64,000 nt of DNA, taken from NCBI GenBank assembly GCA_943704425.1, contig CALSCP010002497.1, forward strand, positions 1-64,000. The letters run 5' to 3'. The notes under the pieces were generated by a model. The model was not told where the DNA came from, did no database searches, and was given only the letters and a program-made list of their open reading frames with translations. This stretch comes from Ministeria vibrans ATCC 50519 (Eukaryota > Protista > Filasterea). Shown here piece after piece: positions 19,399 to 58,100 of this stretch. The first letter of the stretch is position 1, and every line of letters begins with the position of its first letter. The translations under genes were made by a program, and so were the position numbers.

Positions 19399-19539
19399 TG
19401 GTGGCACTCAGAGTTCAACTAACTGTGTGAATGAAGTGAATGATTTTAAGATTTTATTTTTTTTGTAAATGTTCAATCATTTTTATACTCTTCTGGTCTG
19501 TAAACATAGAAAAGTGTAGATACATACTCCAAGGCGACC

Positions 19540-25500: not shown

Positions 25501-28500
25501 CAGCAGCGATTCGTCAGACAACGAATACGATTTTGACGACGATTTCGACGACGATGACGACGACGATGATGAAGACGACGACGATCATTTTGACGATGGT
25601 GCTCATGGCCATGGTCAAACCTTGCCAACTTCCTCTTCTATGACGTCTGCGACTTCAAGGCCACAATCCACGTCGGACACAACCACAACTGTGGTGGCGA
25701 CAACGGCTGTGGGAGCGACACCTTTGACGACCCTCGCACCTTCTTCTCTTGCCCCCAGTGGCACGTCTGGCTCTGTCATTGTTCCCGACCCTGTCGCTGA
25801 TTCTGCGATCCCAGGCAACTTGGCCTCTAGCGCCACCTCGGCTGTTGTCACCAGTGACCCCATCGCCAATGGTGCTCATCACCAAGTCGATGAGAAGCAT
25901 CCTCGTCGGCACAAGAAGATGAAGAAGACGAAGCGACCGCACGCGCGCATGTTCCATGATCGTGACCTGCTTGTCAGTGGTGTTTTTGGTGCGTCTGACT
26001 CAAACAAGGAGGCGCTCACCACGGACGCCGGCCCTGATTTTTCCGATGGCGCTGCCTACCTGACAGACAGTCGTCAAGTGACCGCCTCGTCTGCAGCACA
26101 GTCGGACGTGTTGAACGGAACCAATGGCAAGGCGGCGCGCGACGAGCGCAAGAGGAAGAAGAAGAGGAGGAAGCAACAAAAGAAGCTGCGCGAAACTCGC
26201 AAGACCTCGCAGGACGACGGTCTTGGCGATATCAAGTCTCGGTCGAAGCGTCGCCACAAACACCATCACAAGCGTCGCCAATCACCCGCGCCCGCCACAC
26301 TGCCTGGCTCGTCCAATGCTGGATTCACCTCGATCAACGGCAACGCTCCGCTTGATTACTCCATGTCTCCGCTGACTGTCGCGTCGGGCGCCGCCCCATC
26401 CTCACAGGACGTTGCTTCGCCCCTTTACGCGGGAGCGGCCGCTGGAGCGACTGGAACCGGCTCGCCCTTGACCACCTCAGGTGGCGCTGGTGGTGGTACA
26501 GCCATCGGTGGTGGCGCAATGGGGGCTGGGGGAAGTCAGTCTGCGGCAGCTGCTGCCGCCACTGCTGCCGCCAGCGCATACATGGCCAACATGGTGGGCT
26601 CGTCGCTCGGAGGCGAGTGGCAACCACACGCGAATAAGCGTGTGAACAGTGTTTCGGAACTCTATCACTCCGTTTTGTCCGCCTATCGTCTGCCCCTCTG
26701 GACGCCAACCAACGAGTATGGCGGTCTCAACTCGGCGCGTGGCGAGTGTGTTGTCGAGGGAGTTCGACCGTGCGTTAATGTTCATGCAGGCCCTGTGTAC
26801 GAGATGCGCTCCCTTAGCGCCACCTACGAAAAACGAAACCAAGACAAGGAACACGCGTCGGCAGCAACAGCGACGTCGTCAACGGCGCCCAAGTCGTCCG
26901 CTCCCGGTGCCTCTAGTTCGGGTGGGGGCAGTCGTAACACCGGCAAGGGCACGGCACGACCTGGGGTTTCGACGAGCGCAGGAGGCAAACTGCATGCGTC
27001 GGGCAAAAACGACATGCGATCAGGCCTGTCGGCATTTGCCAAGCATCGCATGGGAGTCGATGGTGTGGGTCTGTCCTCCGACGAGAAGCCCCTCAATCGT
27101 GATCCGTACACCTTTACCGACGTGCGCACCAAGTCGTATGTGGACGTGTTCCTGACGCCTATGTCGGTGGAGGCCTTGAGCATTCTGGTGGAGTCGTTGG
27201 AAGAGCAAATGATCTTTACGAGCGCCTCTCTTCTCGACGACATGGAGCGTGCATACGACAAGACCATTCGCGAACCGGGTGCCATGCCACTGAAGCGTAA
27301 GCGCTATGGCATGTCATTGCCAGGCGTGCAACTTATGTTGTTGGCACACGGTGGTGCCCCGAAGAACCCGTCAACGACAGCCAAGAGCGCCGCACGCCTC
27401 TCTGCACGACGTTCTGGGGCAAGTGCTCTACAGCGCGAGGGTCTCTATGTGGTGTCGGTGTTTCTTGGCGACACAGGTCTTGGTGCAGAGAGGGTTACGT
27501 CGATGCCGGCGCCCTCAGCCGACGAGCTTCCATTTCGTGCGCTCGAACGAGGCGTCGAGGGCAGCGGGTTTCTTTCGGTGGATCGACTGTTGACACGTCT
27601 CATGTGGCTTGGAGACACGCGTCGTACCAGCACCGTTGCGTCTGACAAATCGACATCAGCAACAGGTGGAGGAGGAGGGAGCGTGGGCAACTCAAATCAC
27701 GAACCGGCGTTCAATGCTCATCGCGATGGAGGCATCAACAGTGCACGGTTGTGGACGCGCGGGTTCGACACGGGAGCACACGCTGCGGTCCTCGCCGACA
27801 TGGGAGTTTGCGCGATGCGTGGCACGGTGCAGCAAACTGCGGTGTCCGCAGACTCGGCAGCCGCATACGCGGGTGTCAGCGAAAGCGAGGCGACGAGTGG
27901 TGGAGATGTGGACATGGTTGTAGGCGACGCGCGTGTCTACGACATGTGGCTGGTATGCTCGCATGCCTCTGTCAGCGGCATTGAGTCGTTCATTGGGACG
28001 TGGTACAGCCACGTTCATCGGCTGAGCAGCGCTGCAGCAACCCTTCAGGGTCGTGTGGGTCTTGAGCGACGCAAGAATATGTCGTCACTCGCGCGCACCT
28101 CGCAAGTACTGCCCCGCCGACAGGCCGAGAAGATGTCCGCGAATGAATCGCTGTTGAACGGCCGGCCTCGTTTTCGTGTCGCTTCCGATGTCTCTTGGCG
28201 TCTTTTGCAACATTTGCGTGATTGTCTCGGCGAAATGTCGCATCAGCGTCGACTGGCAGGTCACTCGGTACACAAGGAAGCGCTGCGACGCTTGCTTACA
28301 TCGGCGAGTTCGCGCAAGGCCGAAGAAGCACAACAATTTGGTGCGGTGGCTTTGCTCCTGAAGCCCTGGTGTCAGCGCAACAAGGACAGTTTGGGGATGC
28401 ATGCGCGCTCTTTGATTCTCCCCGAGTTTGGCGTAGCTCGTGACCTGGTGTTTCTGTCGGGTGCGACACCGTTCAACACGAGCGAGGCACATGTGCAAGG

Positions 28501-28833
28501 ACGCACGCAGACCAAATCAGGCTCTGTATCGCTTGGACGCTTTCGTCTGCGTCTCTACGAATGGAGCGACTGCGCTTTGCCGGCTGCCCTTGCCACGGCT
28601 CCTCGCAACGAACTTATCTTTGGCAATGTGCTTGCCGAGGCGCGTGTGCAGCGTTCAGGCGAGCGACGTACGGACGAGGGACGCGGGCACGGCGTTGTCT
28701 TTGTCTCCAAGCAGCGTCTCACCACGGTAGTGCGTGTCACCGAATGTCGTGTCTCTCTCAGTCCTGGCATTTTGCAGTTTGCCGACAAGATTCAAACACT
28801 GTAAGAAGACAAGAGGGCGAGCTAACTATTATC

Positions 28834-28927
<94 letters not shown>

Positions 28928-31900
28928 GATTATTATTATGATTATTATTATTATTATTATGATTGTCATGATTATTATGATTATTATGATTATTATGATT
29001 ATTGCTATTATTATTTTTATGACTATTATATTATTATTATTATTATTCATGTTTTTCTTAGAGCACATCAGGCCAAGTCGGGACGGGTATTTTCGGATGA
29101 TGAGCGACGGCGGATGTTTGAAGAGGATGGAGAGGAATTGGAGAGTGAAGATGGACGACAGCAAGACGAGACTGTGACGACACGCGTGGCTGTCGATGAC
29201 GGGTCGTCGTCGATTGCGGCGCGCACCGAACGCTCGTTTGATCGGCGTCAATTGTTCATGCACGAGGACGACGACGACGAAGGTGGCGATGGCGATGGGT
29301 ACGACGAAGATGACGAAGAGGACGACGACGAGGACGACGATTACGACTATGACGATGAAGACGACGAGGACGAGTTGTACGACGAGGACGATCTGGACGA
29401 GGAGGAGGAGGACGATGACGAAGATGACGACTACGACTATGACGACTCGAACGAGGATGACATCAAGAGTAGCGATGCCATTTCGAGTGGTGTGGGCGGC
29501 GCGAGCGAGGGAACGAGCGGTTTTGGTATGGAGGGTGCGAGCGAACGGGGCGGATTGCGAGGGTCGCGTCGTCGGCGGACGGCGCACTCAGTGCGCAACG
29601 AAGGCAGCGAGTACATCGAGATGGACGTGTTGTCGCGCAACAGCTCTGAGAATGACCTGCTTCGACGCGAGGCCGAGGATGAAATTGGTGACTTGCAGCC
29701 GCGACCAGCCATGTCATTGCGTGGTGCGAAACGACGCAAGCGCTCGCGCAATCGCATCAAGTTTTCTATTGATGCGCCCTCGTCGCTGAGTCTCACGCCT
29801 AACCACACTGCGGCTGACTTTTCCGACGCGGCCATTGACACGTCGCGCACGGCCCCCACGACACTGTCGGCCGCCATCTTGTCAGGGACCCTCTCGGCCG
29901 AGTACCAGGCGAGTCTCAAGGCGGCCAACATTGCGGCAATGCTGCCCATCCACAAGGTCGAGTGGACCAGCATGACAGTGGTGGGCATTTTGGAGCGACT
30001 TACGGCGGACACACTCGTGTCAGGAGCCCGCGCCGTCTTCAGCATGGAGGGTGTGCGTTTGAGCGGCTCGCGCCGAAGTGACGAGCAATCTCTTGATGCC
30101 GACGCACCGCTGACGCTCGATCCGGTGCGTCCTCGCGAGCCAGTCACACCCACATCCAAGGTGCGCGTCACCAAGACGGCACTGGTGACCATTTCCACTG
30201 TGGGCTTCCAGGTGATTCGTGTGGTTGACGCCCAAATCATGGCTGTGCTGCTTGTGCCCATGATCGAGGGCTCGTTTGGCCAGGCGACCATTGGCGATGG
30301 AGACGGTCACACGGCGCAAACACTCGTGGTGCGCTGGAAGTCATTCACGCTACGTGTGCCCCAGGAGATCTCGTCGGTTGCCCATCTTGCTGTGCGATGG
30401 CGACGTGCATTTCGCTCGTGGTCGTTGCGTCGTCGCGAACAACGCGAAGAAGTCAACCAACTGAAGGAGTTCAAGCAAATGCAGTACGAGCTGTTGCGAC
30501 AGCAGCGCGAACAGAATCGCCAACGTCGTCGCAGCAAGATTGCTGGTGACGTGCTTTCGACAGATCACCTGCCGACTCTTGGAAGTGCCGACAGTACCGT
30601 GCTTGGTGGTGATGGTGGTGGTGGTGCCGGTGTGTGGCGAGTGAGCGACCAAACGCCAGCGTCCCGTGCAAACGAACAGCACGCGCCGGTGGTTGTGTCG
30701 GAGATGTTGAATGCGGCACGAACGTCCGTCGAGCACTTCAACTTTGTGTACGTTCTGCTTCCAAGCATCAAATTTGCGGCACATCCGATTCCGTCGCTTG
30801 TCGTTGCCTATGAGATTGATCGCGTTGGCGTACTCGTGCGAAGCTCGTCCGATGGCATTGACGACGCCCGTGTTGATGTGCGCCAGCACAAGATGTTCTT
30901 GCAGACGTTGCAAAAGGGCTCGCGTCGCACACCGACCGTGTTGCCACTGCCACGCCTCCTTGGCGATTGCAAGGTCGTCGAACCGCGTGGTCGTCTGCTT
31001 CTTGGTCAACCGGATGGCTTGCATGCCGCGCTCACGCGCACCGTGCTAGGTACGGTTCACGTACGCTCCTTCCGCATTTCTTTGTCGGTGACTACCGTGA
31101 ACCATTTGATGCACGCTCAAGCGTTGCTTGTCAAGGACATTGACAAACTGTTTGAGACACTCTCGGAGCTGAGAGAGGAGCCGCCCCATCGCGCGAACGT
31201 TGGGAACATGTCGGGCGACGACGAGGAGTCGGCTTACAAGAGCCCTCGCGGCACGTCGACTACGGCAAGCTCACGCTCGATTGGCGGCCGTCCCTCTACG
31301 CCTGTCGATGTTCATTCTGACAGTGCCGCGCCGAGTGCGAGCGGTGTGCCTCCTTCACCTGCTGCTGGCGATTCGGCTGACGTGAACGTGCCAGCAGAGA
31401 GACGACGCATTGCAGTTGACTATCGCTTTTGTCTGTTCCTTCAGGGGATCGACATTGGCTGTGTGTCACCTATCGCGGTGGTCTCCTTCTCGACAGGCAA
31501 GATCAAAGTGTCGCTGGGCGCTACCAGCTCGGGCTACGCGCTCTACCGTGATCACTTGGTGGCTGCTGAGCTGTCAGATTCCCAACCCGCCTCGGGACTG
31601 GTGGGTGGGCCTTTGCAGCGGACACTGACGGACCTGTCAACATACGGCATGCCTCCCATTGTTGTGAACAAGGGTGCGGAGCGTGGTAGTATGGATAACA
31701 GAGATGCCGAACGCTGTGGCAGCAGTGGAGGAGCGGCGAGCAGCTCCAGTGGTGGTGGCAGTGGTGTCGCGGGTAGTCTACTTGACGCTGCCGCCGCCCT
31801 TTTGTCACCTCGCTCTGCTTCGGGTAGCATTCGCAGTGGCGCCAGAGGTGTCGGAGGTGGACCGGGAAGCCGTGGTGCTGGTGCTGGTGGTGGTGATACA

Positions 31901-34900
31901 GCTGAAGCGATTCGCTCAATCCCTGTTGGTGCGTCGTCGTCCGGTGGTGGTACTGTTGCGAGTGGTGGCTCGGGCAACGGCCGTGGCAGTGGCGAGGGAC
32001 TCATGGGCACCGCGACCTCGTTACCTCTGCTTGCAACGCCCTCGGTCGACGCCATGGCCACGAGTGGTCTTGGCGTGAGTTTTGGACAGGTGTTTGTGGC
32101 GCGCGTTGATGAAGACTTGCTGCCGAGCATGGCGAGTGTGGACAACCCGCCGCCAGTCGTGTCGGGTCCATCGTGGACATTTTTGGAGCAAAATTCTGCT
32201 CGCTGGAGCGCCTTCGTTGACGTTCTCGTCTCTCTTCGCTGTGGCGGCGATCCCGTTGCAACCATTAACGCTGATATGATTGCAGGGGAAGCGCGCATTC
32301 GCACGACCGTTGTTCTTGAGAATGATTCGATGGCAACCCTCTCTTCCACATCATCACCATCGCCGCCACCACCACCACCGCCGCCGCCGCCACCACCACC
32401 GCAGCCATCATCATCATCATCGTCACAGCAGCATCACCATCAACAACATCATCATCACCAGTATCACCGTCAACAACAACAACAACAACATCAGCAGCAG
32501 CAGCAGCAACGTGAGAGTGGGACAAAGAAGCGACGTGACTCGTCTGCCGCCAGTCGCTACCTTGGTCGTGTATTTGGCTTTCGTATGGCCAGCGGCCGAC
32601 GCGCCGCGGGATCGACCACGGCCGCCGAGCGCGGTCCCATGATGCACTTGGTGCGCGTGCAGGACACGTACATTGTGGCCTCGACATCGACCGTGGATCG
32701 TGGCATGCGCTTTGCTCTCTTCTTTCGCAATGCCTATGAACACTTTAATGCGCAACACATGTCAAATGATGCGGTGCGCAATGCCCGTCGGCGGGTTGTT
32801 CGTTCGACGATGGACTTGCGACGAGCACATCGCTCTGCAGAACGACGCCGTGGAGAACAACGTCACGACTCAGCGCGCGACGGTTCGTCAGCGACCGGCT
32901 CGCCACCCTCTGCCAGTGCCAGTGCCAGTGCCAGTGCAAGCGCTTCCGAGGCCTTTCTGAGTCGCCACAAGGGACACGCATCATCGTCTTTGACCACGCC
33001 TGTGTCTGCACCCTGGTTTGCCCCTGCCGCTCCACCGCCGCCGAAATCGTCGTCAACAAGCAACAAGACGCATGAGACACCACGACGTGTCGCGTGGCTG
33101 CGTGTCGAGGTGCGACGTCTCGCCATTGCCGTGCCTCTTTTCTACGATGACGCCTCGGCACTCACCATGAATCCACCGTCAGCGCTGGTTCTCACGGTGA
33201 AGACTGCGGGTCTCAATGTGAGCGGCCACGATGGCAGCTTTGGCATGCTTGACAATTTCCTATTGCGATTTGATCCGAATTTTGACCTTGCATCACCCAA
33301 GTTTTTGTGGGAGCTCTCGTCCGAGGCGCTCATCACGTCCAAAGTGCGCAACGTTGCCATCATCGATCGTGGCCAGCTCAAGATTGTGTCGAAGACAATC
33401 AAAAGTGCGTCACAGGACACGTTTGCGCCTTCAACCACTGATGGCGATGCTACAACAGCACCACCGCTCGTGAATGTGATGGACAATGTTGAGACAGATC
33501 AGGCACGCATCGCCGTGCAACTTGTCATGTCGGGCCTCAACTTGCATCTCGATGCGACAGTGCGCACCCATTTGGAGTTTGTGGTGAGTTCGCTGACTCA
33601 TCTCTCCAGCAGCGAATCTCAGGCGGCCCGCGAGCAGGCCGCTGCGCACGGACTCAAGGACAATGTCGAGGCAGAGCGACGTTCGATTGAGACTATTCCG
33701 GAAGCAAACGAGGTGGCGGCTGCTGGTCGCCAGACACACGGGGTTGCAGCAGCCGATGCTACTGCTGTCGGCGGTGAGGCGTTTTCTACTGGACCCCTTT
33801 CGTCACGCTCACGACACAATTCGAAACTGGCGGGCACTCGGCATCATGCTGGCTCGCTCACACGACTCCCGCCTATTCTGAGTAAGAGAAGTCGCTTTTT
33901 ACGCCAATCACGTCGTCGCGACAGCTTCCTCTCGACGGCATCGCACGCTCCGACGGCACTGGCAACAGATGTACCTTCCACCGCAGCGACCTCCACGACC
34001 ATGTCGACCGGAGCCTCGGCGCCCATTCTAAGCGGCACATTCTCGCCGAGTATGTCAGACAGCAGTGATGCAACATGGCGTCGCTCGAGTACCGTGCAAA
34101 AGCAGGTGTCTCAAATCCAATTGCACTATGTGATCGACGTGAGTTTGACCATCGAGTCGGGGCGTGCAGTGCTTCATTGTTGCGAAAGGGAGCCGCAGGC
34201 GGCAGCACCAACCGCCACGACGGCTAAAACGTTCTTGTCGGTTGGCCATGCGCCACCGAGTCGTCGTACGTCCGTCTTGACTACTTCCAATTCGAATGCG
34301 TCCGCCAGTCTGGATGGGCAATCGACTTCATCGACGGGTGGGGGCACCGCTGGCGGTGGGACAGACGACGAGAATTCTCTTGCTGACATGCGATTCACTG
34401 AGTTTATCGTGCCACGCATCGGCTGTCACTTTAACTACCAATCGCTCGAGTCGGAGCTGCACGCCGATCTTCTTATTGGCAGCATGGGCGATGAGGTGAA
34501 AGTACAACCGCACCTGTTGGAGTTTATTGAAGAGGTTTTGGCGCTGCGAGGTGCCGCTGCGGCTCAGGTGCGACGTACACGGGCTGTTTCGCGAGCGAGT
34601 TCCATTCGCGAGTCGATTGCGAGCCACAGACGTCTGTCGGTCGAGCAGCAACGTCAGTTGCAGTTGGAGGCGGAAGAAGCGAAACGATCGGAGCTGATGA
34701 CACCAGCAATGCAACGTACTGAGTCGATGGCACGTCAACAAGAACATGGAGGGAAGCGCGGCCCGACGACGTTGGCGGTGACGGGGTCGGCGAGACCATC
34801 AGAGATTGCACAGACGCTTGGCGAAGCGGGTCTCTCGCCTGTGTCGGTGCGTCGTCTGTTGCAGATGCGAGGACTTGCTGGAGCACCCAAGGCTGGTGCG

Positions 34901-37900
34901 ACTGACTCGACCTTGTTGTCACCGCTTTCGTCGTCGCTGTCGTCACGCCCGTCATCAGGTCGAGGTCCTCCGGCGCCCGTGTTCACCGTCACGCCCCCAA
35001 CCGCGGCTGGCAAGTCGGCGGACACCGATGCAAAGGTTGAAATGGAGGCAGGCGAGCGCACGTTGTCTCGTTCGACGAGCTTTCAGGGTTCCGACTGTGG
35101 TGGGGATGGTGAACGGGGTGCGGGCGAAGAGTTGGAGGAGGATGAGGAGGTGACTGCGCTGTCGAGCATGAGTGATTGGAGCCTGAAGTTGAGCGTGAGT
35201 GTGCGACTGATGCCAATCAAGTTTGTGGTGAGCTGTGGTGCGACGAGCAAGACGGCGTGCACGATTGCCTTGCCCATGGTTCTTGTGATGGGAACGTCAT
35301 CACCGGCACTGCTTGATGCCAACACGGGTGCTCGCATGAGCAACAGCAAGCAAACGGTGACGTGCCTGCTCAGCGGCTTCTCCGTTGCCCTGCAGCACCC
35401 TTATGCGAATGGCCCGGCGCTGCGTGTTGTCATGCACAGTATTACGATGAACATGACACGCACCAAGTTGCCAACGGGACGACTGGTCTTTTCGGTGCTG
35501 GGCGATGCGGAGGACATTGTGTTGGCAGGCAATGTGCAGCAGATGGATGAGATGGTTGAGTTTCGCCGTGTCTGGCTTGAGAGCCATCTGCTGAAGAAGA
35601 TGTTTGCGGTGGACGAGACTAGTAATGCAAACACTGACGGGGTGGTTGGCGCGACCTCTGCGGAATCTGTGCCGTTAGGGCAACGACCTCGGTCGCGGTC
35701 GCACCTCACGCTGTATAAGTTAGATGGTGGCGTGAGCACCGACGATGAAGACGAAAAGAGGAGGAAGAAGAAGGTACAGAAGGAGGACGGAGGAGAAGCG
35801 GGAGAGAGAGTGAATGAATGGGAGGAGGAGGTAGAGAAGGGAGAAGAAGTGAAGGAGGGAGAGGACGAGGAGGGGGAGGAGGAGAAAAAGAAGAAGAAGA
35901 AGGAAAAGGAAAAGGATGTAGACGAGGACGACGGTCGACCTGTCTTGCTGATTATGGTGCGCCTTCGTGAGTTGCGCGTGGAGACTAATCTTGGCCCTCA
36001 GCTGGGCACGTCGACTATTGTGCGATTGCGGCAGATTGTGGGACAGGGACAACACTTGTTGACTGGCGATCGAGCAGTGGCGCTCAACTTTGGCATTGGG
36101 GACATTGCGCTGGGGAGTGATGGTACACAGCTGAGTGGCGAGGTGACCATTGAGACGGTGCGCCTGACCATGTTCCATCGCCACGCTGTGCCCGACGCGG
36201 CATTTGAACTGCAGACGGTGAGGGGTTCTCCTGTGTCTGTTGCTGGCGTCAATGCGTCGACGTCGACGGACAAGAAGACATCAGCGGACAATGCCACGGA
36301 TCATCGACGCACTGCTTCGGATAGTGGCACTGCTACTACCGTTGATGCTGCGGAGGCACGAGATGGCGAGTCGACTGGAACTCCTCCGCCGACGGCACCA
36401 CGGGGCAGCGTGACCAAGGCACGCGAGCGCTGGTGTCTAAACCGCTACAATGCAATGGTGAGCAAGGTCAATGTGCGCTTGGCACACAACCGCGTTCCCA
36501 TGCTCGTGGTGGCGCTGGACAATGTGACCTGTGGATTTTGGGACTCGTGGCCCATTGTGCCACTCCATGTGCCGCCACCGTTGCGTGCGTGTGTGGTGAC
36601 GGGCGAGGCGGGTCTTGGCCAGGCGTCGGTGATTGTGAGTCGCGAGACAGCGCCTGCCGGCATGGCGGTACTGTTCCGCGTGCGCGAGCAGATTTCTGAA
36701 GTGAAGCGCAAGCTTGTGACGATGAAACCAGCATTTAAGGTGCGCGGTGCGGGCACTGGCGGTGGCGGAGCTGGTGCGTCGCTGGGGAGGCACACTACGA
36801 GTCGTGTCGGCGACGAGCCATCTTTGACGACTCACTCACATGGTGGTGGGGGAGCACTGCTGCAAGTGCCTGGTGGTGCAGCGGGGACAACGGCGGCTGG
36901 GACCATCACGAGTTCGGGCGACACTTTGGAGGAGCTTAAGCAGCTCAAGTACCAGCCGGTCCTGTCGGTGGGGGTGCCGGCAAAGTCTGTTCAGGGAACG
37001 GTGCGTGTGCGCTGCGGCACCATCACCGTGGCGTGTTTCAACCAGTGCTTCAACGACGTTTCGTGGCTGCTCGTTCACATAACAGGCTGGCATGTGCGCT
37101 ACCACCGTGTGCCGCTGATCGCACAGGCGACGGGTGTGCGTCAGCGTGTGCGTATCACGCTGGGTGACATCAACGGCGAGAACCCCACAGCTCACGAGGC
37201 GGCGACCGTGTCACAGATTCAGGTTAGCGATGAGAGAGAAAAGACGTCTTTATTTTTAGAAGAATGTATCTTAATTCTGTCTTTGTGTCTGTATGTCTGA
37301 CTTTGTGTGTGTGTGTTTCTCTGTAGATTGCGAAGAACGCCACGCGAGCAGACGCGAGTGTGGACGAGTGGCTTGAGTTGATTAACGCACGGGCGGCGTC
37401 CAAGTCGACCGTGTTTTCGATTCCGGGGCTGGTGATGCGCGTTGAGTCATACTCGCCGTCGCTCGCAGCCGTTGTCTATGTGAACCTTGTTTCGGAGTTT
37501 AGTGGCCCGCTTGGTGTGACGGTCGCCGTGGACTTGTATGCGTTTCTGCGGGCGACAGCGGATGCGTATGTAGACGAGGTGAAGGCGCGACACAAGAAGG
37601 CCCAGAGTCTGTGGCAGTCTGGCACGCACAAGGTCAAAGGTATCAATCTGTTCCGCAATCTCAAGTCGCTGCAACGATCGGCATCAACGAGTGCGGACGA
37701 GGCGGACGCGAAGGCAGCGGCAAACAAGAAGAAGAGGGAGGAAGATGATGAAGAGGCAGTCGCAGCGGCGGTAGCGCGCGCCGAGCGCGTTTTCCACACC
37801 AAGCAGTTTGTCTTTGCACCCGACATTCGATTGACGGCATACCAAGCAGGTGCGTCTTGACCATTTTTTTTTAATAATAATGATAATAATTAATCTAATT

Positions 37901-42806: not shown

Positions 42807-42893
42807 AGCGAATGCAAATAACAAAAATGTCTGATCTTTCTAATTTCTATTCATTTTGATCTTTCGCTCTCTTTTGTGCGATCGCGTATCGGT

Positions 42894-45378
42894 ATGCCCA
42901 AGAAGAGCGTGCATGCATCTGTGCAGCCGAATCCGGCTACCCCATCGCGCCCGCCGATGATCACATCTGTTGTTGACGAAGATAATTCGCTTGACGCATT
43001 CGACATTCCGCCCCCCTCTACACGCCGGACACCGCCAAGACGATCGCGTGCGGTACCGCCTCCTGCTGCAAGGAGTAAGGCCGTTGCGAAGCGGAAGCGG
43101 AAGGTTGTGGTTGAGTCTGAGGAAAGCGACAGTGAGAGCGAGATCGAGAGTGACGACAGTGACGAATGGAGTCCAACCGAAAAGCAACAGAGTAGCGCCA
43201 ATGAGGATGAGGATGAGGAGGAGGAGGAGGAGGAGGAGGAGGATGAAGAGGAAGATGGCGTGTTGGATGTTGTTCCCGTGGCCAAGGTGCGACGGCGCAG
43301 TGGAGGCACGGAGAAGAAGAAAGCGGCGCCCACTCGCACCCGCAAACGCGCCAAAACCACACAACCCAAGACGACTACGACTACGGTCACGACGGCTACT
43401 ACTACTACTACTACAACTGCTACTACTACTAGTACTAAGACTGCGGCTCGTACGACGACGAAGGCGAAAGCGCCTGTGGAGGCGAGCGACGAAGACGAGA
43501 GCGACGAGGACATGGCTGGCTTTGAGACGGTCGATGAAGACGACGACACACGCGTTGAGGAGGCACCGCGCGCCGCATTGGAACTGGTTGTGGGCGGGGA
43601 TGGAAGTGGGAAGATGGAATCGCAAGGGAGCCGTGAAGAGAAGCACCGGCAAATGTGGGAGACGTACTTTCGAAGGAAAATCAATCGGTTCGATCGGGAG
43701 CAACATCAACTGGTGCATCGCGTCGGCTTTGTGTGCCACCTCGCCTGGGCGTTGCGTCGTCAACAGCTTGCGTGCAGCGAGAACATTCGCGATGTGCTGG
43801 ACGAGGCACTAGCAGCTCACAAGAGGGAACCACAGGCGCTGACCGCCAGCGATTTAAACAGCGTGACGGAGTGGCTTCGGGCGCGTGTGGTTGTCTCGCC
43901 CGACCCAGTCCCTGTGGTGGAGTACGACGAAATGGAAGCATTGTTGATGTCCGTGGCGATAGGTCTACACGAGAATGACAAGGGGGACAAGAAGAAGAAT
44001 AAGAAGAAGAAGGAGCGTACGAGGGAGCGCATGAGCGTATCATGGGACATGATTGTAACACTCTACCTTGCGTGTCTGCGAGTCGTTGGGTTTCGCGCGC
44101 GTCTCGTGTACAGTATGCATCCGCCACCGTGGCGACAGGCCACCAAGTCCAAGTTGGAAGTGCGCATTGTGAAGCGAGAGTTGTACTTTCGCAATGTGCC
44201 CGCGTCGATCCGGTGTGGAAGAGTGCGAAAGGGGGACGTTGAGGAGAAGGGAGAGAAGGAGGGCGGGAGTGGCGAGGGCGACGATGATGATGATGAAGAG
44301 GAAGAAGATGGTGATGATGAAGAGGAGGAGGAGGAGGAGGAGGAGGAGGAAGCGGCAAAGAAGAGGAAGAGATCGAGGAAGAAGAAAGGGGAGGGAAAAA
44401 AGAAGAATGTATATAACGCGTGGGTTGAAGTCTGGCTCAGAGGTGAATGGTATGCGGTGCAGCCACTGCAAGAGCAGGAGAACGATGATGGAAGTAGCAG
44501 CAGCAGCAGCAGCAGCAGCAGTCGTCATGTTGATGAGGAACTAACGTGTGCACACAAGGACGTTACAGAGATGCTGATCAGCGCGCGGAAACCTGTTGTG
44601 TATGTCGTGGCGGTGGATGCGTCGGGACGTGTGAGCGACGAGACGCAGCGATACGCGACGCAGTGGAGCACAACACATCAGATGCGTGCAGAGGAGACGT
44701 GGGTAAAAGCGACGCTGCGGCCGTGGGAGGCGCGGGAGACGGAAGAGGAGAGGGTGGCACGGGTGGCGCGCGAGATGGATCCGGAACGCGACGCAGTGCG
44801 TCTCGCACAACTCAAGGAGGACATCCTGACGGAGATTGCAGAGATGCGGGGACTTCTTGAGCTGGGAAGGGTGCAGCTGCCCAAGCGCGTGTCCGACTTC
44901 AAGAATCATCCGCAATTTGCATTGCGACGGCACCTGCTCAAGTTTGAGTTTCTGTACCCGTGCGAGCAAGTGGAGTGGTACCAGGCGAACAAGAAGGCAG
45001 AGCGTGAAGCGGTCTTCTTGCGCCGCAGTGTTCAAAAGCTGCACACAGTTGAGCAATGGATCAAAGTAAGGGCGGGGAATGTATTATAGACATTGCGACT
45101 GGGCGCACATGACTCTCTCTCACTCTTCTCTTCTCTTTCATACAGTTGGCGCGGAGCGTCAAAGAGGGAGAGGTTGCTTCGAACATGGTCAAGAGTCATC
45201 CCGACTTTAAGACCAAAGAGGTCAGGATGGTGCCCGTCTATGGAGAGTGGCAGACCGAGCCGTACCGTCGGCCCAGTGCCAAGGTAGAAACAAAAATGAG
45301 AGTTATAACAATAATATATAATCATTATTATATTAATATGACGTCTTGGCTTTCTATTCTCTATGACGTATTTTCTTA

Positions 45379-46215: not shown

Positions 46216-48476
46216 ATGGCTCTCACCCTTCCTGAACCACCAAAGTCGTGGACGCCCAATGAGGCCCCCAAAATCACTGCATCCATTTCAGGTTTGACAT
46301 TTTCCCTTCCACTTCCTCTCGTCGCTCTGTGCCCATGCACTACTCTCCTCCCTCTCCTCCTTGGTAGTAGCTCTCCTTTCTATCGGTTCAACAACCGGAT
46401 GCAAGGGAGCGCAGTCGAGAAACAGCTGAGAAATGTCGTACACGTGGAAACTCATCGTGCGCATGTTCGCTTCTCTCTCTCTCCTCTCTTTCTCTCTTTC
46501 TCTCTTTCTCTTGCTTCTCAGGCTTTCCCCAGACCGGCAGCATTGAGCCGGTGGGTCCGTTCTTCCAGGCGATCTCTCGTCGTGCGCGTCACAACCGAAC
46601 AGAAAGTGAAGATGAGCGTGTGCAGAAGGCAGCAATTGCGAAGGCGCAGGAGAACAAGAGTGCAGCCGAGTCGACACCCAACGCTCATCTGTTTGACGTC
46701 GACGACAAGGCCATGGAGGACTTCCTCCTGGACCAGGACCCCGCCGAGTGGCGCTCCAAGCCTATCGACATGTACAAGGTGATGGGCCTGTCGAAACTGC
46801 GATGGCGCGCCACCCTTGAGGACATCAAGTTTGCCTACTCGAAGAAGGTACTACCACCGCACAACACAACACAACACAACCAATGATTAATCGTTTCTCT
46901 CCCAACTTGGTAGGTGCTGTTGTATCACCCGGACAAGCGTGGTGGTCCGTCGGGGGCGGATGAGGAGGACGACGATCTGTTCAAGGTGATCAAGAAGGCC
47001 TTTGAGATTCTGACGGACAAGAACTGGCGTTCTGCCTTCGACTCGATCGATCCATTCTACGACGATGCAGTGCCGGCGGTGAACGAGAAGAATAAGAAGA
47101 ACTTTTACGCGGTGTTTGGACCGGTGTTTGAGCGCAACGCTCACTTTTCGACGACCTACTCGGAGACGGCACCCTACAAGATTGGAACGGAGGAGAGCAC
47201 GGAGGAGGAGGTGAACGCCACGTACAACTGGTGGTACAGCTTTAACTCGTGGCGCGAGTACCAGTGGTTGGACGAGGAGGACAAGAAGCAAGAGAACCGC
47301 GACGAGCGCCGCTGGAACGACAAGGAGAACAAGGCGGAGCGCAAGCGTCGCAAGGCCGCCGAGGTGGCGCGCATGCTTCAGCTTGTGGACAACGCCATGG
47401 CGTGTGACCCGCGCATTGCGCGCTTCCGTGCTGCCGAGGCACACCGCAAGGGTGCCAAGAAGCGTGAGAAGGAGGAGGCCGCGCGTCTTGCGAAGGAAGA
47501 GGCAGACCGTGTCAAGGAGGAGGCGCGCATCGCTGCCGAAACGGCGGCTGCACTTGCCAAGGAGACTGCGGCCGAGGCCAAGAAGAAGCGCGACTGGGAG
47601 AAGCAACAGCTGAAGAACCAGCGCAAGCGTCTGCGCAACACAGCCAAGGCGAACCAGTACTTCTTGTCGGCCGACGATGAGGCGGACCCGGCCCAGCTCG
47701 AGGCGGGCATCGCACGCATCGAACAGCTCTGCGAGAAGCTTGGCTACGAGGCGCTCGATGCCGTCTCAAGCTCACTCATTGACATGGTGGCGTCCGGTGC
47801 GACTCACGAGGCACTTGCGGCCGAGCTTGAGAGTGCCCTCACGTCGCTGGGCAAGGCGCAGCACGACGCTAAGATGGCAGCGGACGCGGCCAAGGCAAGC
47901 GCAGGCTCAGAGGCAGCGTCGTCGTCGAGCAAGACAACAGCAGAGGTGTCCGCCGCACCGTGGACGTACGAAGAGAAGCAGCTGCTGGTCAAGGCCGTCA
48001 AGGTGCACCCGGCAGGCACCAATGACCGCTGGGCCGTCATTGTGCAGTACCTGCACGAGCACTTGCCGGGCCGACCGGCGGACGCCAAGGCGCGCAGCGA
48101 GAAGGACGCGCGTAACATGTACAAGGAACTTCAGTCGATGGGTGATCTGTCCAAGGAGGAACGCGAAAAGGTCAACTCGGAGGCATTTGCGGCGTTTGAG
48201 CGCAAGAAGCACACGCGCGACAACGCCGAGCCGGAATCGGCGCCGACGCAGCGCATCGAGGCTGACTCGTCAGTCGGCGAGCTGCAGACGCCGTGGAGTG
48301 CCGACGAGCAGAAGGTCCTTGAGGCCGCCATCCGCACCGTTGACAGCAGCGCACCCGACCGCTGGGCCCTCATTGCCGCAAAGGTCCCGGGGCGCTCGGC
48401 CGACGCCTGCCAGCACCGCTTCAAGGAGCTTGCTGCGGCCGTCAAGGCCAAGAAGGCTGCAGATGCTAAAAAGTAA
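46216..48476 (+). CDS. DNAJC2: DNAJC2/zuotin/MPP11 ribosome-associated J protein with two C-terminal SANT domains, 3 exons
   Basis: EPVGP...HNRTESEDER; J domain YKVMGLSKLRW...YHPDK; FNSWREY, ENRDERRW, DPRI; SANT domains WTYEEKQLLVKA..RW and WSADEQKVLEAA..DRWALIA. Confidence 0.96.
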
Positions 48477-50197: not shown

Positions 50198-51442
<1,245 letters not shown>

Positions 51443-51750
51443 ATCGCCACTGTTCCGTTGAGATTTAGGGGAAAATAATTATTTGAATTTGAGTTTTCAG
51501 TGTTTGTTAGAAAAAATTCATAATAATATTAAAAAAATCGCAAAACAAACTCGGAAACTGATTGTACAGTATTACAACATCCAACGTCTTGAGCGCGCCA
51601 GCGCGGTAAACACTGTGATTTAACTCATTTACTATACAAACCACAAGATATAATTGAGGTGCACTGTAGAGATTTGTAACACTCGAATTGGCTTCAAATG
51701 TGAATTGTGATCTCAAATTTCAAAGGTCAAAACACATACAACTTTTCCTC

Positions 51751-52440
51751 ATGTCAAAGCTAGCTTGGCGCCATCGAGAGGTGCTTGAGCTGCAAGAGGC
51801 CGTGGCCAAGTATGGGACGCGCTGGGAGGCGATTTTGCAAAATGCTGATTATCAAAAGCATTTGGGGCGATTTTCGGTCAAGGAGATCGCACGCAAGGCC
51901 TACAGCGTCGTCCCGAACCTCGTGACGACCCCGAGCACCTTTGTTTTAAGCAAGGGGCCGCTGAGTTCTCGTGCGGCCGCGGTGCGCAGAGGAAAGGCCA
52001 ACTTGTCAAGTGCGAAAAGTGAATCATTCGTTGTTGTGGACAAGAACGACGACGAGGAAGCGGGGGAGGAGGAGGAGGGTAGCAGTGGTGATGGTAAGGC
52101 CATGAACGAACGGCATGGCGCTCGCAACGATTCAAAGGGGCCGTTGATTGCAAGAAAGAGAGGTCGGAAGGCATCAGTTGGTTGCGCGGCAGCAACGGCA
52201 GGCGCATCAAAGAAGAAGAAGGGGCCGGCGTCGAGGGCAACAGCGACATCTTCAGTGACACGCAAGACGCAGGGGAAGTCGAAGGCGAGTCAGAAGCCCA
52301 CCTTGAAGACGCAGGCGGCGGCAGCGGTTGCAGCTGCGCTGCAGTTGCTGAAGGAGGCACAGCAGAAAAAGAAGAAGAAGAATGCAGAGGAGACGAGTGA
52401 CGATGAAGAGGAAGGTGCCAAGGACGACGACGACGACGAC

Positions 52441-52480
<40 letters not shown>

Positions 52481-53465
52481 GCGAAGAACAGTCGAGTGAT
52501 GAAGAAGAGCAAAGTACCGACGACGATGCTGATGATGATGAAGATGATGATGATGAAGAGGAGGAGGAGGAGGAGGAGGAGGAGGAGAAAGAGGTAGCGT
52601 TTTGGCCGCGACCGTCGTTGGAAGATGACTGGGTCGAGCGGTGCATCAAGTGCGGTCTTGGCGGCGAGCTTGTCTGCTGCGACGGTTGTCCACGTGCCTG
52701 GCACATTGAATGTCTTCGTGGCATAGACGTGCCCGAAGGAAGCGCTGACTGGTTCTGTTCCGTGTGTCAGACACCGCCCACCACCGAGATGACAAGGCAT
52801 GACCAGGTCAGGAACAACAACAACAACGACAACACTACGCCCACGCACACACACAATTTTTTTATTGACCGAACTTTGTACAATAGGAGACAGCCATGTC
52901 GGCAGTTGTCAACGTGTGCAAACTGTTCCTGCCGGGCCATTTCATGTCGGTCATGGGCTCACAGATTGCACAAGTGCTTGCCAGTCGCCGTATTGCGGAA
53001 CGTCGAGGGCGCGCCACTATCAACACGGGCTACCGGCGTGACGGCATGCGCGCCACAGCGGAGCTCATGGCGCTCAGCGACCCAGCACCCCGTCCCTCCT
53101 CAACCGACATTCCCGACTTTGAACTGACCTACTCCCCTGCGCAGCGCAAACAACAGTTTCTTAGCTACGGTCTCTGCCAGACAGGCAAGCGCCTCACTAA
53201 TGCACAAGTACGTCTCAACAGATAAAGACGCCACGCTACACGCATGCAGTCACTGTTTTCAACATCCCCTTTGTTTCATCATAGGTGTCGCGCTGCTATA
53301 GTGTCGTCATGGCAGCGTACAATCGCTACATGGACATTGTAAATCGTATGGATTTGCGTCGCGCACTCACCGAAGGATTTGCCGAAATCAAAGTGCGTTG
53401 TGAGGGTCGTTATGATATTCAAGTAAGCGCCATGGTCATTCTCAAGAGAAGAATGAGAGGAAGAG

Positions 53466-53548
<83 letters not shown>

Positions 53549-54950
53549 GGAGGAGAGCCAAAATAAGTAGTAGATAGAGAGAAACAAAACAAAGAGGGGG
53601 GAGAGAGAGGGAGGAGAGCCAAAATAAGTAGTAGATGGAGAGAAACAAAACAAATCGAAAGAGATCAATCATTCATTCAACCCCTGCTTTGCTCAGGTTC
53701 CCGAGTTGGAGCTGCACGAGTTTTCCTTTCTGCGCGAGAAGGCACCATGGCTGCCACTGGTGCGGGCGCTGCTGGGCAAAGACTGCGTGTGCGTGCACTC
53801 GGGCGTAATGTTGTCCATGCCGGGCAGTAAGACACAGTTTTGGCACCAGGACGGACCGCACCTCAACCGAAACCGTCTTGTTCATCTCCCACCCCACGCC
53901 ATCAATATTTTTGTGCCTCTCGTCGATCTCACGGCGCGCAACGGACCCACCGAGTTTATCCCCACCACACATTACAACTCCATGTGGGACACAGAGACCA
54001 TTGAGCCCATGTCGCTCTACCCGTCCGCCGGCGAGGTCATTGCCTTTGACTACCGCATCAAACACCGCGGCCTTGGCAATTGCTCTCCAGCTCCCCGTCC
54101 CGTCATCTACATCACCTATGCCATTCCGGGTTTCATCGATGAGGCAAACTTCTCCAATAGACGCTACCGCATGACTCTGCCAATGCTCCCCTCTCAAGAA
54201 TCCCGTCGTAAGCGCGCTCTTAAGCGCAAGGCAGATGTGAACAGCAACGCAGATGGCGACGACAACGACAACGGCAGTAGCGACAATGAAATCAGCGATG
54301 TAGACGACACCAAACCTGTAGCGAAGCGCGTGAAAGTCATGTGTCCTGCTCCTCGACCGCGTGGTCGTCCTCGCAAGAGTGCGTCCGCCTCAACCACCAC
54401 TACAGCAGCATCAGTAGTTGCGAGTGACAAGGAGAGTGGTCCTGGTCAAAGAACCATTCTCACTCGCAACGACTTACACGCGTAAGAAAAAAAAATATCA
54501 AAGTTGTTTTTCGCTCACTACTCTCTCTCTCACTATCTGTCTCTATCACTTTGCTCTTTCACTCTATCTCTGCCTTTTCTTTTTCTTTCTGTCACTTTGG
54601 TTATTTCTCTTTCTGTCACTTTGATTATTGCTCCTTCTTTCACTTTGATTTTTTCCCCCTCCTCTCTCTGTCTCTTTGTGTCTAACCCTCTTCTCTCTCT
54701 GTCTCTCTTTTCCAACTTACCCAGCGTGCTTGACGCGACCTTCAGTGTGTGGAACAAGGACCGCAACTGGGCGGGCATGTACTGTCAGCTGGTTCTACAC
54801 GTGCACACACACGGTAGTGCCTCCGTCCCCGAAAAACTCCCGTCCAATCCTGATCTCGCAAAATGGGCCAAGACTCAACGGCGCAAAATCGCCGAAAAGA
54901 CTCTCACTCCAATGCATCTCAGCCTCCTTCGCAAGATTCGCTTCCGCTGA
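51751..54950 (+). CDS. Multidomain nuclear protein, ~841 aa: Myb/SANT-like, acidic tract, PHD finger, PhyH-family 2OG-Fe(II) dioxygenase, AT-hook, helicase-associated (HA) domain; exons 51751-52806, 52887-53207, 53285-53422, 53697-54481, 54725-54950
   Basis: Myb-like WRHREVLELQEAVAKYGTRWEAIL; PHD CIKC...CCDGCPRAWHIECL...WFCSVC; PhyH-like PGSKTQFWHQDG...NIFVPLVDL...NGPTEFIP.TH...GEVIAFDYRIKHRGLGN...RPVIYITY; AT-hook RPRGRPRK; HA-like W..MY.QL..H...HGSASVP...PDLAKWAKTQR...L...HLSLLRKIRF. All four introns are GT-AG and phase-consistent. Confidence 0.85.
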
Positions 54951-55016
54951 ACACCAATACAAGACCAAAAATTACGCAAAATTAAACTCCTTATCAGCAA
55001 TGTACATAATAATAAG

Positions 55017-55058
<42 letters not shown>

Positions 55059-55153
55059 TGTAATAAAATATTAATATTATTATTGATAATATTAACGTTT
55101 TTACTGGTACAATAACAAAATATGTTTTTTTAAAACATCATAATAATCTTATA

Positions 55154-58100
55154 TCACAAATCAGCTGAGACCTCACGCAACTCAGTGGGCAGGGTGAACG
55201 CAACAGAGCGGCGAGCCACAGGAGTGTGCACATCCTCCACGTCCGAGTCGACCGACGTGGTCTCGCCCAGCGCCGCCAACTGCCGCACAACCTGCAGGAA
55301 GGATGGGCGCTCGTCCGCCGACTGTCGCCAGCACGCCTCAATGATCTCACGCGTCTCCTGTCCAACTTCGCCGCCAATCATCGGTCGTTTTCCACTCACA
55401 ACAGCCTAAACACACATAGATTCAGATCATTCTTCTTTGTCTATTTGTTGTGTTTTGTGCACCTACCTGTTCAATTTCGTAAATTTCCCGCAATTCTGCA
55501 AAAGGAAGTTTTCCCGTGGCAATTTCAAAGAGAACCATCGCAAAGCTGTACACGTCACTCCCAATGCCATGGACACCCCCAGAGATCACTTCCGGCGCCT
55601 GTTCAACGAATGAAACAGCCAATGAGTGGACGAGAGAAAGGAGGGAGTAAGAAACAAAGTGATAGAGAGAAACAAAGAAAGAGAGAGAAAAAAACAAAGT
55701 GATAGAAAGAAAGTGAGAGAGAGAAAAAAAAAAAACAAGTGATGGAGAGAGAGAAAGAAAAAAAAAATAGAGAGAAAGAAAAATAAACAAAGCGATAGAG
55801 AGAAAACAACAACAACAAAATCAAAGGAGGTGGGTTGTGCATCTTCTGACCTGCCAGAGGAGTGTACCCAAACCCGTCGTCAGAATTTGTCCCTCGCGTG
55901 AGAGTACGCTAGAGTGAGCAGCTTCACACAAGCGAGCGTTCACTGAGTATGTCCGGCGTCCGTCGCCCCCCGCATCGGAAGAGAAGGTGTGCAGAATCCG
56001 ACTCGTTCCAAAGTCAGCGACTGCAGAAAAAACAAGTATTTAAATTATTCAAACCCCCCTCGTTTTCTTTCGGTACCTTTGCAAGTCCATTTGCGCGAAA
56101 CCAAAAGATTAGGTGTTTTTAAATCTAGAAAGCAACAAAAAAAAATTATAAGAAGAAATAATTATAATTATATAAAAGGACGTCGTGAGTTTTCATACCG
56201 CGATGAAGACACGGAGGACGGAGACTGTGAAGGAAAAGCATTCCCTGAGCAGCATCGAGTGCAAAGCGAATGCGCCGCTCGTACGGCAGCGACTCAAAGG
56301 ACTCTGCAAGCAACGTGTGGAGACTCCCGCGCTCCATAAGCTCCGAGACGAGAAAGGGCAGACGCGTGTCCGGGTGTCGTCCTGCTCCGAGGAACAGCAC
56401 AATGTTGCGGTGCCGCAGCGTCCGGAGGTACCGGATCTCTTTTTCAAACTCACTCACGGCTGTTTGGTCGCTCTCGGCCACTACACAACAATAAAATTAT
56501 TATTATTATTATTCTGCGAAGTATCTTTTTAACACTCTCCTCTCCTTTGTTTGCTACTAGTTATACCTTCAATTTTGAGTTGTTTGATGGCCACAACAAA
56601 GTCACCCCAGTCACCTTCGTAGACATCGCCAGAGGCTCCGGATGCAAGAAGTTTTTTAAAGCGGACATCGCGGTAGTCAATGAGGAAGGCACGCTCAAGC
56701 GCTGCGACGTCGGCACGCGACTCCACAAGAAGACGCGAGTAGGCGGAGGCACGCGTCGTGTAGCGGTCGGCGCGACGGCGCAAGCGCACAATCACAACCA
56801 CCACAACGACAATGACAGCAATGGCAAGCGCGACACCAATAAAGATCCAGGGGGCACGGCAGTTGTCCGACGCTAAATAGCCTGCATTGCAACTGCACAC
56901 CGCATTATAATCCTTGACGACACACGAGCCCTTGTTGTGGCACGCCGACGGCTCACACACTGTACAGTCATCGTCGGATGTACTCCCCAAGGACATCGTG
57001 TACGTGAGCCCGGGACACGACGCACACTTCTCTACTCCCGACTCTGTCGAGTAGTAACCCAGGGGACACGGAGTGCACCTTTTGATAAAAAAAAGAAAAA
57101 AAAGAACATACACAAAAATGCAAACATAAATAAACACCATGAGAAATCGACGCATCCATTTGTGTTATTGTCACTTACTCGGTGAGAGAAAAAGGAGCGC
57201 CATACTGCCCGGGCGGACATGCCACAATGACCTCACGCACAAGATTGCTCGCCAGAATACCTTGCTGTGCTCCTCCAAACACAACCAGACCCTGTGTCTC
57301 GGTCCAGATGGTGTTCGCAGCAAACGTAGAGTAAGGTGTGTTGGTGCAGGGCACAAGGGTCCATTGACCCGACAGAGCATTAAGCAGGTGAATTTCCGTG
57401 AGGGGCACATTGTCTGGGCCAATTCCACCATAGACAATCATGTTCGAGCCGGCCATGCTCGCCGTGTGGTATGTCGACAGCGGCGGTCGCGCATAGCCCG
57501 CCGATTTGGGTTCCGTGTCCCATTTGTTCCATGAGCCCAGCGCCAAATGGAACACGTACACGTCGCGAAAGATGGGTGCAGGTTGAGCGGTTGTCTCGGC
57601 ATTCCACAGACACTCGACGGAGCCACCGTACAGAATGAGCGTATAGTCGTAGGCGACCAGCGACGCACCACATCGACCCGGCGGCGAGTCAAGTGTCCCG
57701 CCTGGATGCAGCAGTGTCCAATTGTATACTACAGCTTCGCCAGGTGTGTTGTCAATGAGCGAGAAGGACCAGAGATCGTCGAAGAGGGTCGTCTCGTTGG
57801 ATCCCGAGAAGATCACCATGTTCTCTGTGACGCTTGTGCCCCTCTGAGCGACGTAGGTGGTGCTACATTGGCCAGCGCGCGCCAACGGATGTACCTTCGT
57901 GTTGATCTGAGTCCATGTCTGAAAAGAACTATCGAGAATTTGAATAGTCCATGTCTCCGCATTGAACTGATGGGTAGGATGAAGACCGCCAAAGATGGTA
58001 AACGCAGTGTAGGTGTTGGTGCCTGACGTGTAGGACATCAACTCGCCGGTGTGGCAGTAGCGCGCAGACGGGCCGATGGTGCGCGGGTTGCTGATCCTTG

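Follow-up and report, generated by a model that had tools for sequence, protein, structure and literature searches.

To our knowledge, the oxygenases that act on chromatin all come from the JmjC, TET/JBP and AlkB families. JmjC demethylases equipped with readers, such as KDM5 and KDM7/PHF8, combine an Fe(II)/2-oxoglutarate (2OG) oxygenase with PHD, chromo, Tudor and DNA-binding modules, and the TET/JBP and AlkB enzymes are 2OG oxygenases acting on chromatin or nucleic acids, sometimes with DNA-binding fusions. In the PhyH family, PHYH is a peroxisomal acyl-CoA hydroxylase, and KanJ, the kanamycin B dioxygenase of Streptomyces kanamyceticus, acts on an aminoglycoside by oxidative deamination. 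According to Aravind et al. (2012, PMC3417536), the histone demethylases except LSD1 are all Jumonji-related, and in Iyer et al. (2010, PMC2938197) phytanoyl-CoA hydroxylases appear only in bacterial operons, with some protein substrates predicted. Dioxygenases go unmentioned in a 2022 chromatin-evolution preprint, and no description of PhyH fused to chromatin readers was found in the full-text-searchable literature, subscription-only papers lying outside its reach.

Here we analysed a gene of the filasterean Ministeria vibrans ATCC 50519, located at 51751-54950 on the + strand of a stretch of 64,000 nucleotides (nt), the window (positions 1 to 64,000 of contig CALSCP010002497.1, assembly GCA_943704425.1). 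The protein follows the same design logic as the reader-bearing JmjC demethylases but uses another catalytic family, a PhyH domain placed behind a PHD finger. A preliminary description, made from the bases alone, had suggested for this locus a 2OG oxygenase with the PhyH fold that has been recruited to chromatin. Comparison of sequences supports this suggestion, as the catalytic clade appears repeatedly fused to PHD, chromo, MBT, Tudor-knot/MSL3, HMG, MBD and AT-hook modules, with its ligands invariant. The gene probably encodes a nuclear, chromatin-tethered Fe(II)/2OG dioxygenase that belongs to a distinct KanJ-like PhyH clade of unicellular eukaryotes and whose predicted substrate is a chromatin component.

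Gene structure and transcripts

Reading of the + strand revealed five exons, separated by GT..AG introns and continuous in frame, for a product of about 841 amino acids (aa). Exon 1 (51751-52806, 352 codons) is a single open frame which begins with the start ATG and encodes a Myb-like region, basic stretches, an acidic tract and a PHD finger. Exon 2 (52887-53207, 107 codons) encodes a short conserved helical linker (residues 3-30) and, from about residue 90 (53154) on, the first part of the PhyH domain, and exon 3 (53285-53422, 46 codons) the N-terminal helices and hairpin of that domain with a conserved G-R-Y-D. The jelly-roll core (residues 1-150), a conserved basic helix (about residues 154-186) and a disordered tail with an AT-hook are encoded by exon 4 (53697-54481, 261 codons and 2 nt). 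Exon 5 (54725-54950) encodes an HA domain (54759-54944), found at the same place by Pfam and by a scan of the own genome, and ends with the stop TGA at 54948-54950. The four introns measure 80 nt (52807-52886), 77 nt (53208-53284), 274 nt (53423-53696) and 243 nt (54482-54724). Long microsatellites occupy 53455-53555 of intron 3, which is of (GA)n type there, and 54500-54720 of the CT-rich intron 4; similar repeats, together with a short run of unknown bases, occur in the upstream gene at about 50950-51050.

At least part of the locus was present in 12 of 13 public sequencing runs, four of which were compared with positions 51400-55300. Runs X1 and X2, from one study, each gave a single RNA contig (1744 and 1748 nt) extending from 52602 to 54977 and 54981, respectively. 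Both contigs join 52806 to 52887, 53207 to 53285, 53422 to 53697 and 54481 to 54725, and are otherwise identical to the window. All four junctions of the preliminary description are thus confirmed to the exact base. Run X5, from a separate study, shows junction 4 directly, and its loose ends at junctions 2 and 3 coincide with the adjoining exon ends, namely the end of exon 2 and the start of exon 4. Run X11, which holds 97% of the sampled words and resembles genomic DNA, is collinear with the window, contains intron 1 and shows no joint at all. For exon 1, RNA contigs cover 51753-52413 and 52602-52804, the former as a second contig starting at 51753 or 51755. The 3' ends of the RNA contigs fall at 54977-54987, and expression was detected in at least two studies. 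The RNA-verified model corrects the output of prokaryote-style gene calling, in which the locus figures only as a 259-aa fragment (P0001).

A minor X1 contig (54452-54729) retains intron 4 at a depth of 5.1 versus 95.9 for the spliced form. Translation of this transcript would end at a TAA stop at 54483-85 and yield an isoform lacking the HA domain, provided that the contig does not simply reflect pre-mRNA. A promoter and terminator scan of the 5' intergenic region returned nothing; its models are of bacterial type and irrelevant to a eukaryote.

The transcripts also bear on the question of whether the fusion is real. Adjacent Myb-PHD and PhyH-HA genes might have been read as one, or the locus might be a decaying chimera without function; we give this hardly any credence. 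The trinucleotide repeat at 52414-52601, which encodes acidic residues, is crossed by no single RNA contig, and the 5' end lies beyond contig reach, both of which leave some room for such a reading. The repeat is flagged as repetitive and contigs break there in RNA and DNA runs alike, and the continuity from the Myb-like region to the PHD finger is predicted from the uninterrupted open reading frame (ORF) in DNA and the similar contig depth on either side of the repeat. The preliminary description had itself allowed for the Myb-PHD and PhyH parts being separate genes, whereas one RNA contig leads from the PHD-coding end of exon 1 through all junctions into the HA exon. In addition, the order and spacing of PHD and PhyH are collinear with full-length transcripts of other protists, and the intact catalytic residues and the expression in at least two studies argue against a chimera. 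A fusion created by gene prediction was rejected, as RNA joins the parts. A transposon-borne gene was also rejected because the gene is single-copy, spliced and expressed, the catalytic clade occurring once in the organism's own 29.7 Mb genome.

The PhyH catalytic domain

Pfam, PDB and fold searches were run exon by exon, and the model of a metagenomic homologue, P0007, served as a proxy for the whole PhyH domain. Exon 4 scores 54.3 bits with PhyH (PF05721; cut-off 22, E 2.9e-14) over profile positions 68-212, as the preliminary description had anticipated, and exons 2 and 3 alone gave no Pfam match. Local BLAST places residues 3-30 of exon 2 on residues 167-194 of P0007 and residues 90-97 on residues 310-317, and the Pfam PhyH model in P0007 begins where the end of exon 2 aligns. 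In the intron-free protein P0006 of the choanoflagellate Salpingoeca urceolata, exon 2 corresponds to the sequence up to residue 100, exon 3 to residues 101-147 and exon 4 to the sequence from residue 148. Exon 3 finds a counterpart in 80 of the 158 family proteins, immediately before the segment matched by exon 4. Since the exons are collinear with intron-free homologues, the PhyH domain spans exons 2-4.

The first two iron ligands form an H-Q-D motif (53844-53852; His50 and Asp52 of exon 4) that aligns with H-L-D of KanJ, and the third, the distal His123, is followed eleven residues on by Arg134 (54063-54098), in a segment which likewise aligns with KanJ. These four residues are invariant in a 66-sequence family alignment and in alignment A1, in agreement with the intact H-Q-D...H set and downstream Arg first read from the translation. 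By analogy with the family, Arg134 presumably binds the C5 carboxylate of 2OG. The invariant iron and 2OG ligands led us to reject a pseudo-enzyme.

Among relatives of solved structure, KanJ (PDB 6S0R, 7CL2) comes closest, whether judged by sequence or by fold. A search of exon 4 against the PDB gave KanJ at 7e-13, followed by proline, leucine and ectoine hydroxylases and fungal meroterpenoid oxygenases. The AF2 model of exon 4 has a predicted local distance difference test (pLDDT) value above 90 for residues 1-150, and its best Foldseek match is KanJ (2.7e-9; root-mean-square deviation 3.0 Å over 160 columns; 26% identity in that alignment), followed by SptF and TlxIJ. Likewise, the P0007 model matches KanJ with a Z of 22.0, compared with 17.3 for PHYH, 17.2 for PHYHD1 and about 15 for prolyl hydroxylases. 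In contrast to the Ministeria protein, to which it is about 22-27% identical, bacterial KanJ, about 280 aa long, stands alone and carries no reader or DNA-binding modules. Human PHYH and PHYHD1 (PDB 2A1X, 3OBZ) share PF05721 and the fold, but are far more distant than KanJ and also lack chromatin modules. Inspection of the window protein by eye found no obvious peroxisomal targeting signal (PTS1 or PTS2), and a peroxisomal PhyH orthologue was rejected on this ground and on the placement in a KanJ-like clade.

The domain does not group with the established chromatin oxygenases. No exon has a Pfam match to JmjC, TET/JBP or AlkB at E≤1, and no JmjC, TET or AlkB structure occurs in the Foldseek matches listed or among the 50 best VIA matches of the P0007 model. 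By Pfam and fold, the TET/JBP and AlkB enzymes are therefore of another family, as are the JmjC demethylases. The P0007 model also matches chain 14 of PDB 8fnc, a subunit of the trypanosome RNA-editing complex RESC, with a Z of 18.2, which sets a precedent for the presence of a PhyH-like fold in a complex associated with nucleic acids.

Accessory domains and the protist family

The PHD finger (residues 298-339; 52642-52767) scores 25.6 bits with PF00628 against a cut-off of 24 and has all eight zinc ligands of a complete C4HC3 finger, as described earlier. Its best PDB matches by sequence are CHD4 PHD1/2, NSD2 and AIRE PHD1 (E 1.8e-12 to 3.6e-10), and several PHD fingers of this group read the unmodified N-terminus of H3. 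Complex prediction of the finger with residues 1-38 of H3 from the same genome gave a score of 0.21 against a mark of 0.34, which speaks neither for nor against binding. A word-index search with the PHD part of exon 1 returned no candidates.

The exon-5 domain is a clear HA domain (PF03457; 43.8 bits against a cut-off of 28.4, E 3.3e-11, positions 2-64 of 64), in line with the HA-like C-terminus first reported, and a search of this exon against the PDB by sequence gave nothing significant. HA is strongly expanded in the own genome, with at least 54 matches at about 25 loci, and the terminal exon therefore appears to be a promiscuous module acquired locally. HA copies often form tandem arrays within very long open frames, for example in C2362, C1419 and C524. 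The long Asp/Glu tract noted earlier is also present in the translation (52384-52593) and stems from trinucleotide repeats.

Two further modules are weak calls below their Pfam cut-offs. Residues 4-51 (51760-51903), where the preliminary description had placed a TRF-like Myb start, are a putative SANT/Myb-like helix-turn-helix, for which PF00249 matches only the first two helices. The PDB sequence matches of this region (MYB24, RSC8 SANT; E 0.5-0.6) are not significant, and its ten best named Atlas clusters are all Myb-type (top score 0.88), which we take as a lead only. The AT-hook (54351-54380) has the R-G-R-P core flanked by Pro, Arg and Lys but likewise falls short of its profile (PF02178). 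P0007, Paulinella P0010 and Stephanoeca P0163 have comparable G-R-P hooks in their tails. The helical linker between PHD and PhyH (52887-52976) is common only to P0007, P0159 and P0013. The corresponding region of P0007 (residues 160-245) forms a four-helix unit in the P0007 model (pLDDT 72-92), and no usable Atlas match was obtained for exon 2 (best score 0.75).

Exon 4, used as the query of an exhaustive search without a profile, retrieved 2651 proteins at E≤1e-3, of which 132 reach E≤1e-30. The catalytic domain lies near the C-terminus in many members, which are 600-1150 aa long. Among the 128 members of at least 380 aa, Pfam detected PHD in 23, chromo in 10 and HMG in 7, as well as MBD, MBT and MSL3/Tudor-knot in one each and other Tudor types in 1-2; the only other partner was a single Spc7 match. 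The architectures include MBD+chromo+PhyH, PHD+chromo+HMG+PhyH, chromo+HMG+PHD+PhyH, MSL3-chromo/Tudor-knot+PHD+PhyH and PhyH+MBT.

All named members at E≤1e-30 are unicellular eukaryotes: Thecamonas trahens, Diacronema lutheri, Emiliania huxleyi, Telonema subtile, Paulinella chromatophora, Picozoa, the diatom Extubocellulus spinifer, whose member has no Pfam-detected reader, and the choanoflagellates S. urceolata, S. kvevrii and Stephanoeca diplocostata. Animals, fungi and plants are absent among the named hits, an impression drawn from those hits only. The fusions are found in annotated genes of Thecamonas and Diacronema and in transcripts of Telonema, Paulinella and three choanoflagellates; since several are complete transcriptome ORFs, they are not artefacts of gene prediction.

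Five homologues (T. trahens AMSG_09122, D. lutheri KFE25_010973, T. subtile P0014, Paulinella P0010 and metagenomic P0007) belong to the same clade, with 42-56% identity in the exon-4 core, and carry automatic names only. All five have PHD and PhyH in the order seen in the window, and P0007 shares in addition the helical linker and an AT-hook at its C-terminus, but none has the Myb-like start or the HA domain. Neither of these two parts found a match in the 157 family proteins tested. PHD and PhyH, with or without the AT-hook, form a widespread core, to which this lineage alone has added the Myb-like start and the HA exon. The architecture, which the preliminary description had recognised from no characterised protein, is in this respect not a one-off, as PHD with PhyH recurs in protists, although its two ends remain peculiar to Ministeria among these relatives.

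The clade signature motifs F-D-Y-R-x-x-H-R-G, H-x-x-N-V-F-x-P-L and G-R-Y-D are present in exons 3 and 4. A FastTree phylogeny of 130 catalytic cores, read cautiously in view of weak deep support, contains a reader-rich group of 47 rows. Readers were detected in 31 of these, the remainder being mostly short fragments. The window protein falls in this group beside the PHD-bearing P0161, and the group includes a choanoflagellate subclade with MBT.

A second branch of long, diatom-type proteins, to which the Extubocellulus member belongs, has conserved N-terminal regions without a Pfam match. HMG-box-like and MBD-like motifs were seen by eye in its N-termini (P0033, P0054, P0178 and about 75 others, 600-1150 aa), and the conserved region may represent undescribed chromatin modules. 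The nearest bacterial relatives (L013-L016) are standalone PhyH proteins from metagenome-assembled genomes of Myxococcota, with 31-36% identity and the same signature motifs, which gives a possible hint at the origin of the clade. In the two loci examined, L013 (3001-3702) and L015 (2542-3714), the bacterial PhyH gene lies directly upstream of a methylmalonyl-CoA mutase gene.

Both the bacterial neighbours and the characterised relatives invite a reading in which the substrate is a small molecule or a non-histone one (a polyamine, a free amino acid or another nuclear protein) and the enzyme is merely tethered to chromatin, or in which it serves as a local O2/2OG sensor with a binding output. 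The closest characterised relatives are small-molecule enzymes, the substrate of KanJ being a polycationic aminoglycoside, and the nearest bacterial homologues adjoin the mutase gene. We consider this quite improbable, as repeated independent fusion to varied readers together with strict catalytic conservation is the pattern of chromatin-substrate enzymes, and no metabolic partner domain occurs in the 128 members.

The partner domains also bear on a nucleic-acid substrate. The protein might oxidize a DNA (or RNA) base such as 5-methylcytosine, thymine or N6-methyladenine and thus be a functional analogue of TET/JBP or AlkB on the PhyH fold. DNA binders recur in the clade: seven members have an HMG box, P0011 has a canonical methyl-CpG-binding MBD, and AT-hooks occur in several proteins. 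The AT-hook, Myb-like region and HA domain of the window protein and the conserved basic helix after its catalytic core favour the same idea. We nevertheless regard it as unlikely, because the histone readers (PHD, chromo, MBT, Tudor) outnumber the DNA-binding partners, and DNA-binding modules are also common in histone-modifying enzymes. In addition, the top 38 fold matches contain no nucleic-acid oxygenase, only thymine-7-hydroxylase, which acts on the free base, at a Z of 12.4 compared with 22 for KanJ. The net charge of the catalytic core, about -3 and followed by the basic helix, does not discriminate between protein and DNA.

Proposed mechanism and significance

Based on the domain set and the family comparison, we propose that a chromatin component is oxidized by a reader-delivered enzyme. 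Recruitment to nucleosomes would fall to the CHD4/AIRE-type PHD finger, and the HA domain, the AT-hook and the SANT/Myb-like start may provide further contacts to DNA or nucleosomes. With O2 and 2OG, the catalytic domain would then hydroxylate a carbon atom on chromatin, most plausibly in a histone-tail side chain, with a DNA base as the main alternative. The outcome might be a stable hydroxylation or, if the carbon bears nitrogen, an oxidative demethylation or deamination as in the chemistry of KanJ. The histone side chain is favoured because histone readers dominate the partner domains and because PhyH chemistry on amino acids and amine-bearing carbons, exemplified by the proline, leucine and ectoine hydroxylases and by KanJ, would transfer easily to Lys, Arg or Pro.

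Several findings weigh against a chromatin-tethered oxygenase. The characterised enzymes in the sequence and fold matches all have small molecules, free amino acids or acyl-CoAs as substrates, so that a macromolecular substrate would be new for the PhyH family. The second branch of the tree, which holds 79 of the 130 catalytic domains, has one detected reader domain only. The Myb-like match reaches 19.6 bits (E 0.001) against a cut-off of 24.4, and the AT-hook, with its core and basic flanks present, 14.3 bits (E 0.037) against 17.4. Coverage by RNA contigs sets in 2-4 nt into the ATG at 51751, with no upstream exon or leader attached, and the next in-frame Met is residue 117; transcription starting 3' of the ATG would drop the Myb-like region. 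We still favour the chromatin-tethered dioxygenase as the probable function of the gene.

Elsewhere in the window, an intronless gene on the - strand (15484-19407) encodes a DHX37/Dhr1 helicase with a DHX37_C domain, about 46-65% identical to fungal and animal proteins, a level that by itself hints at no more than an Amorphea or holozoan-like protist. The + strand carries, by Pfam, a glycosyltransferase of the dystroglycan-type Glyco_transf_49 family (1527-3113), a Rad4/XPC homologue (42876-45086) and a zuotin/MPP11-like protein with DnaJ, ZHD, RAC-head and Myb domains (46914-48473). Two adjacent uninterrupted ORFs of 2829 and 2728 aa lie on the same strand at 20315-28804 and 29114-37300.

We tentatively propose, at a little below an even chance, that the Ministeria gene belongs to a fourth, undescribed class of chromatin oxygenases, PhyH/KanJ-type and reader-delivered, that writes or erases histone or DNA marks outside the reach of JmjC, TET/JBP and AlkB. 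If so, the recurrent coupling of a PhyH-type domain to histone and DNA readers would extend the chromatin oxygenases by one class, possibly with another chemistry such as side-chain hydroxylation or oxidative deamination on chromatin, and would link the availability of O2 and 2OG to chromatin by a new route. The named members come from lineages whose epigenetics is poorly known, including haptophytes, diatoms, choanoflagellates, apusomonads, Telonema, Rhizaria and Picozoa. Many of the hosts are ecologically important marine protists and several are culturable, and the family offers a concrete, testable set of enzymes.

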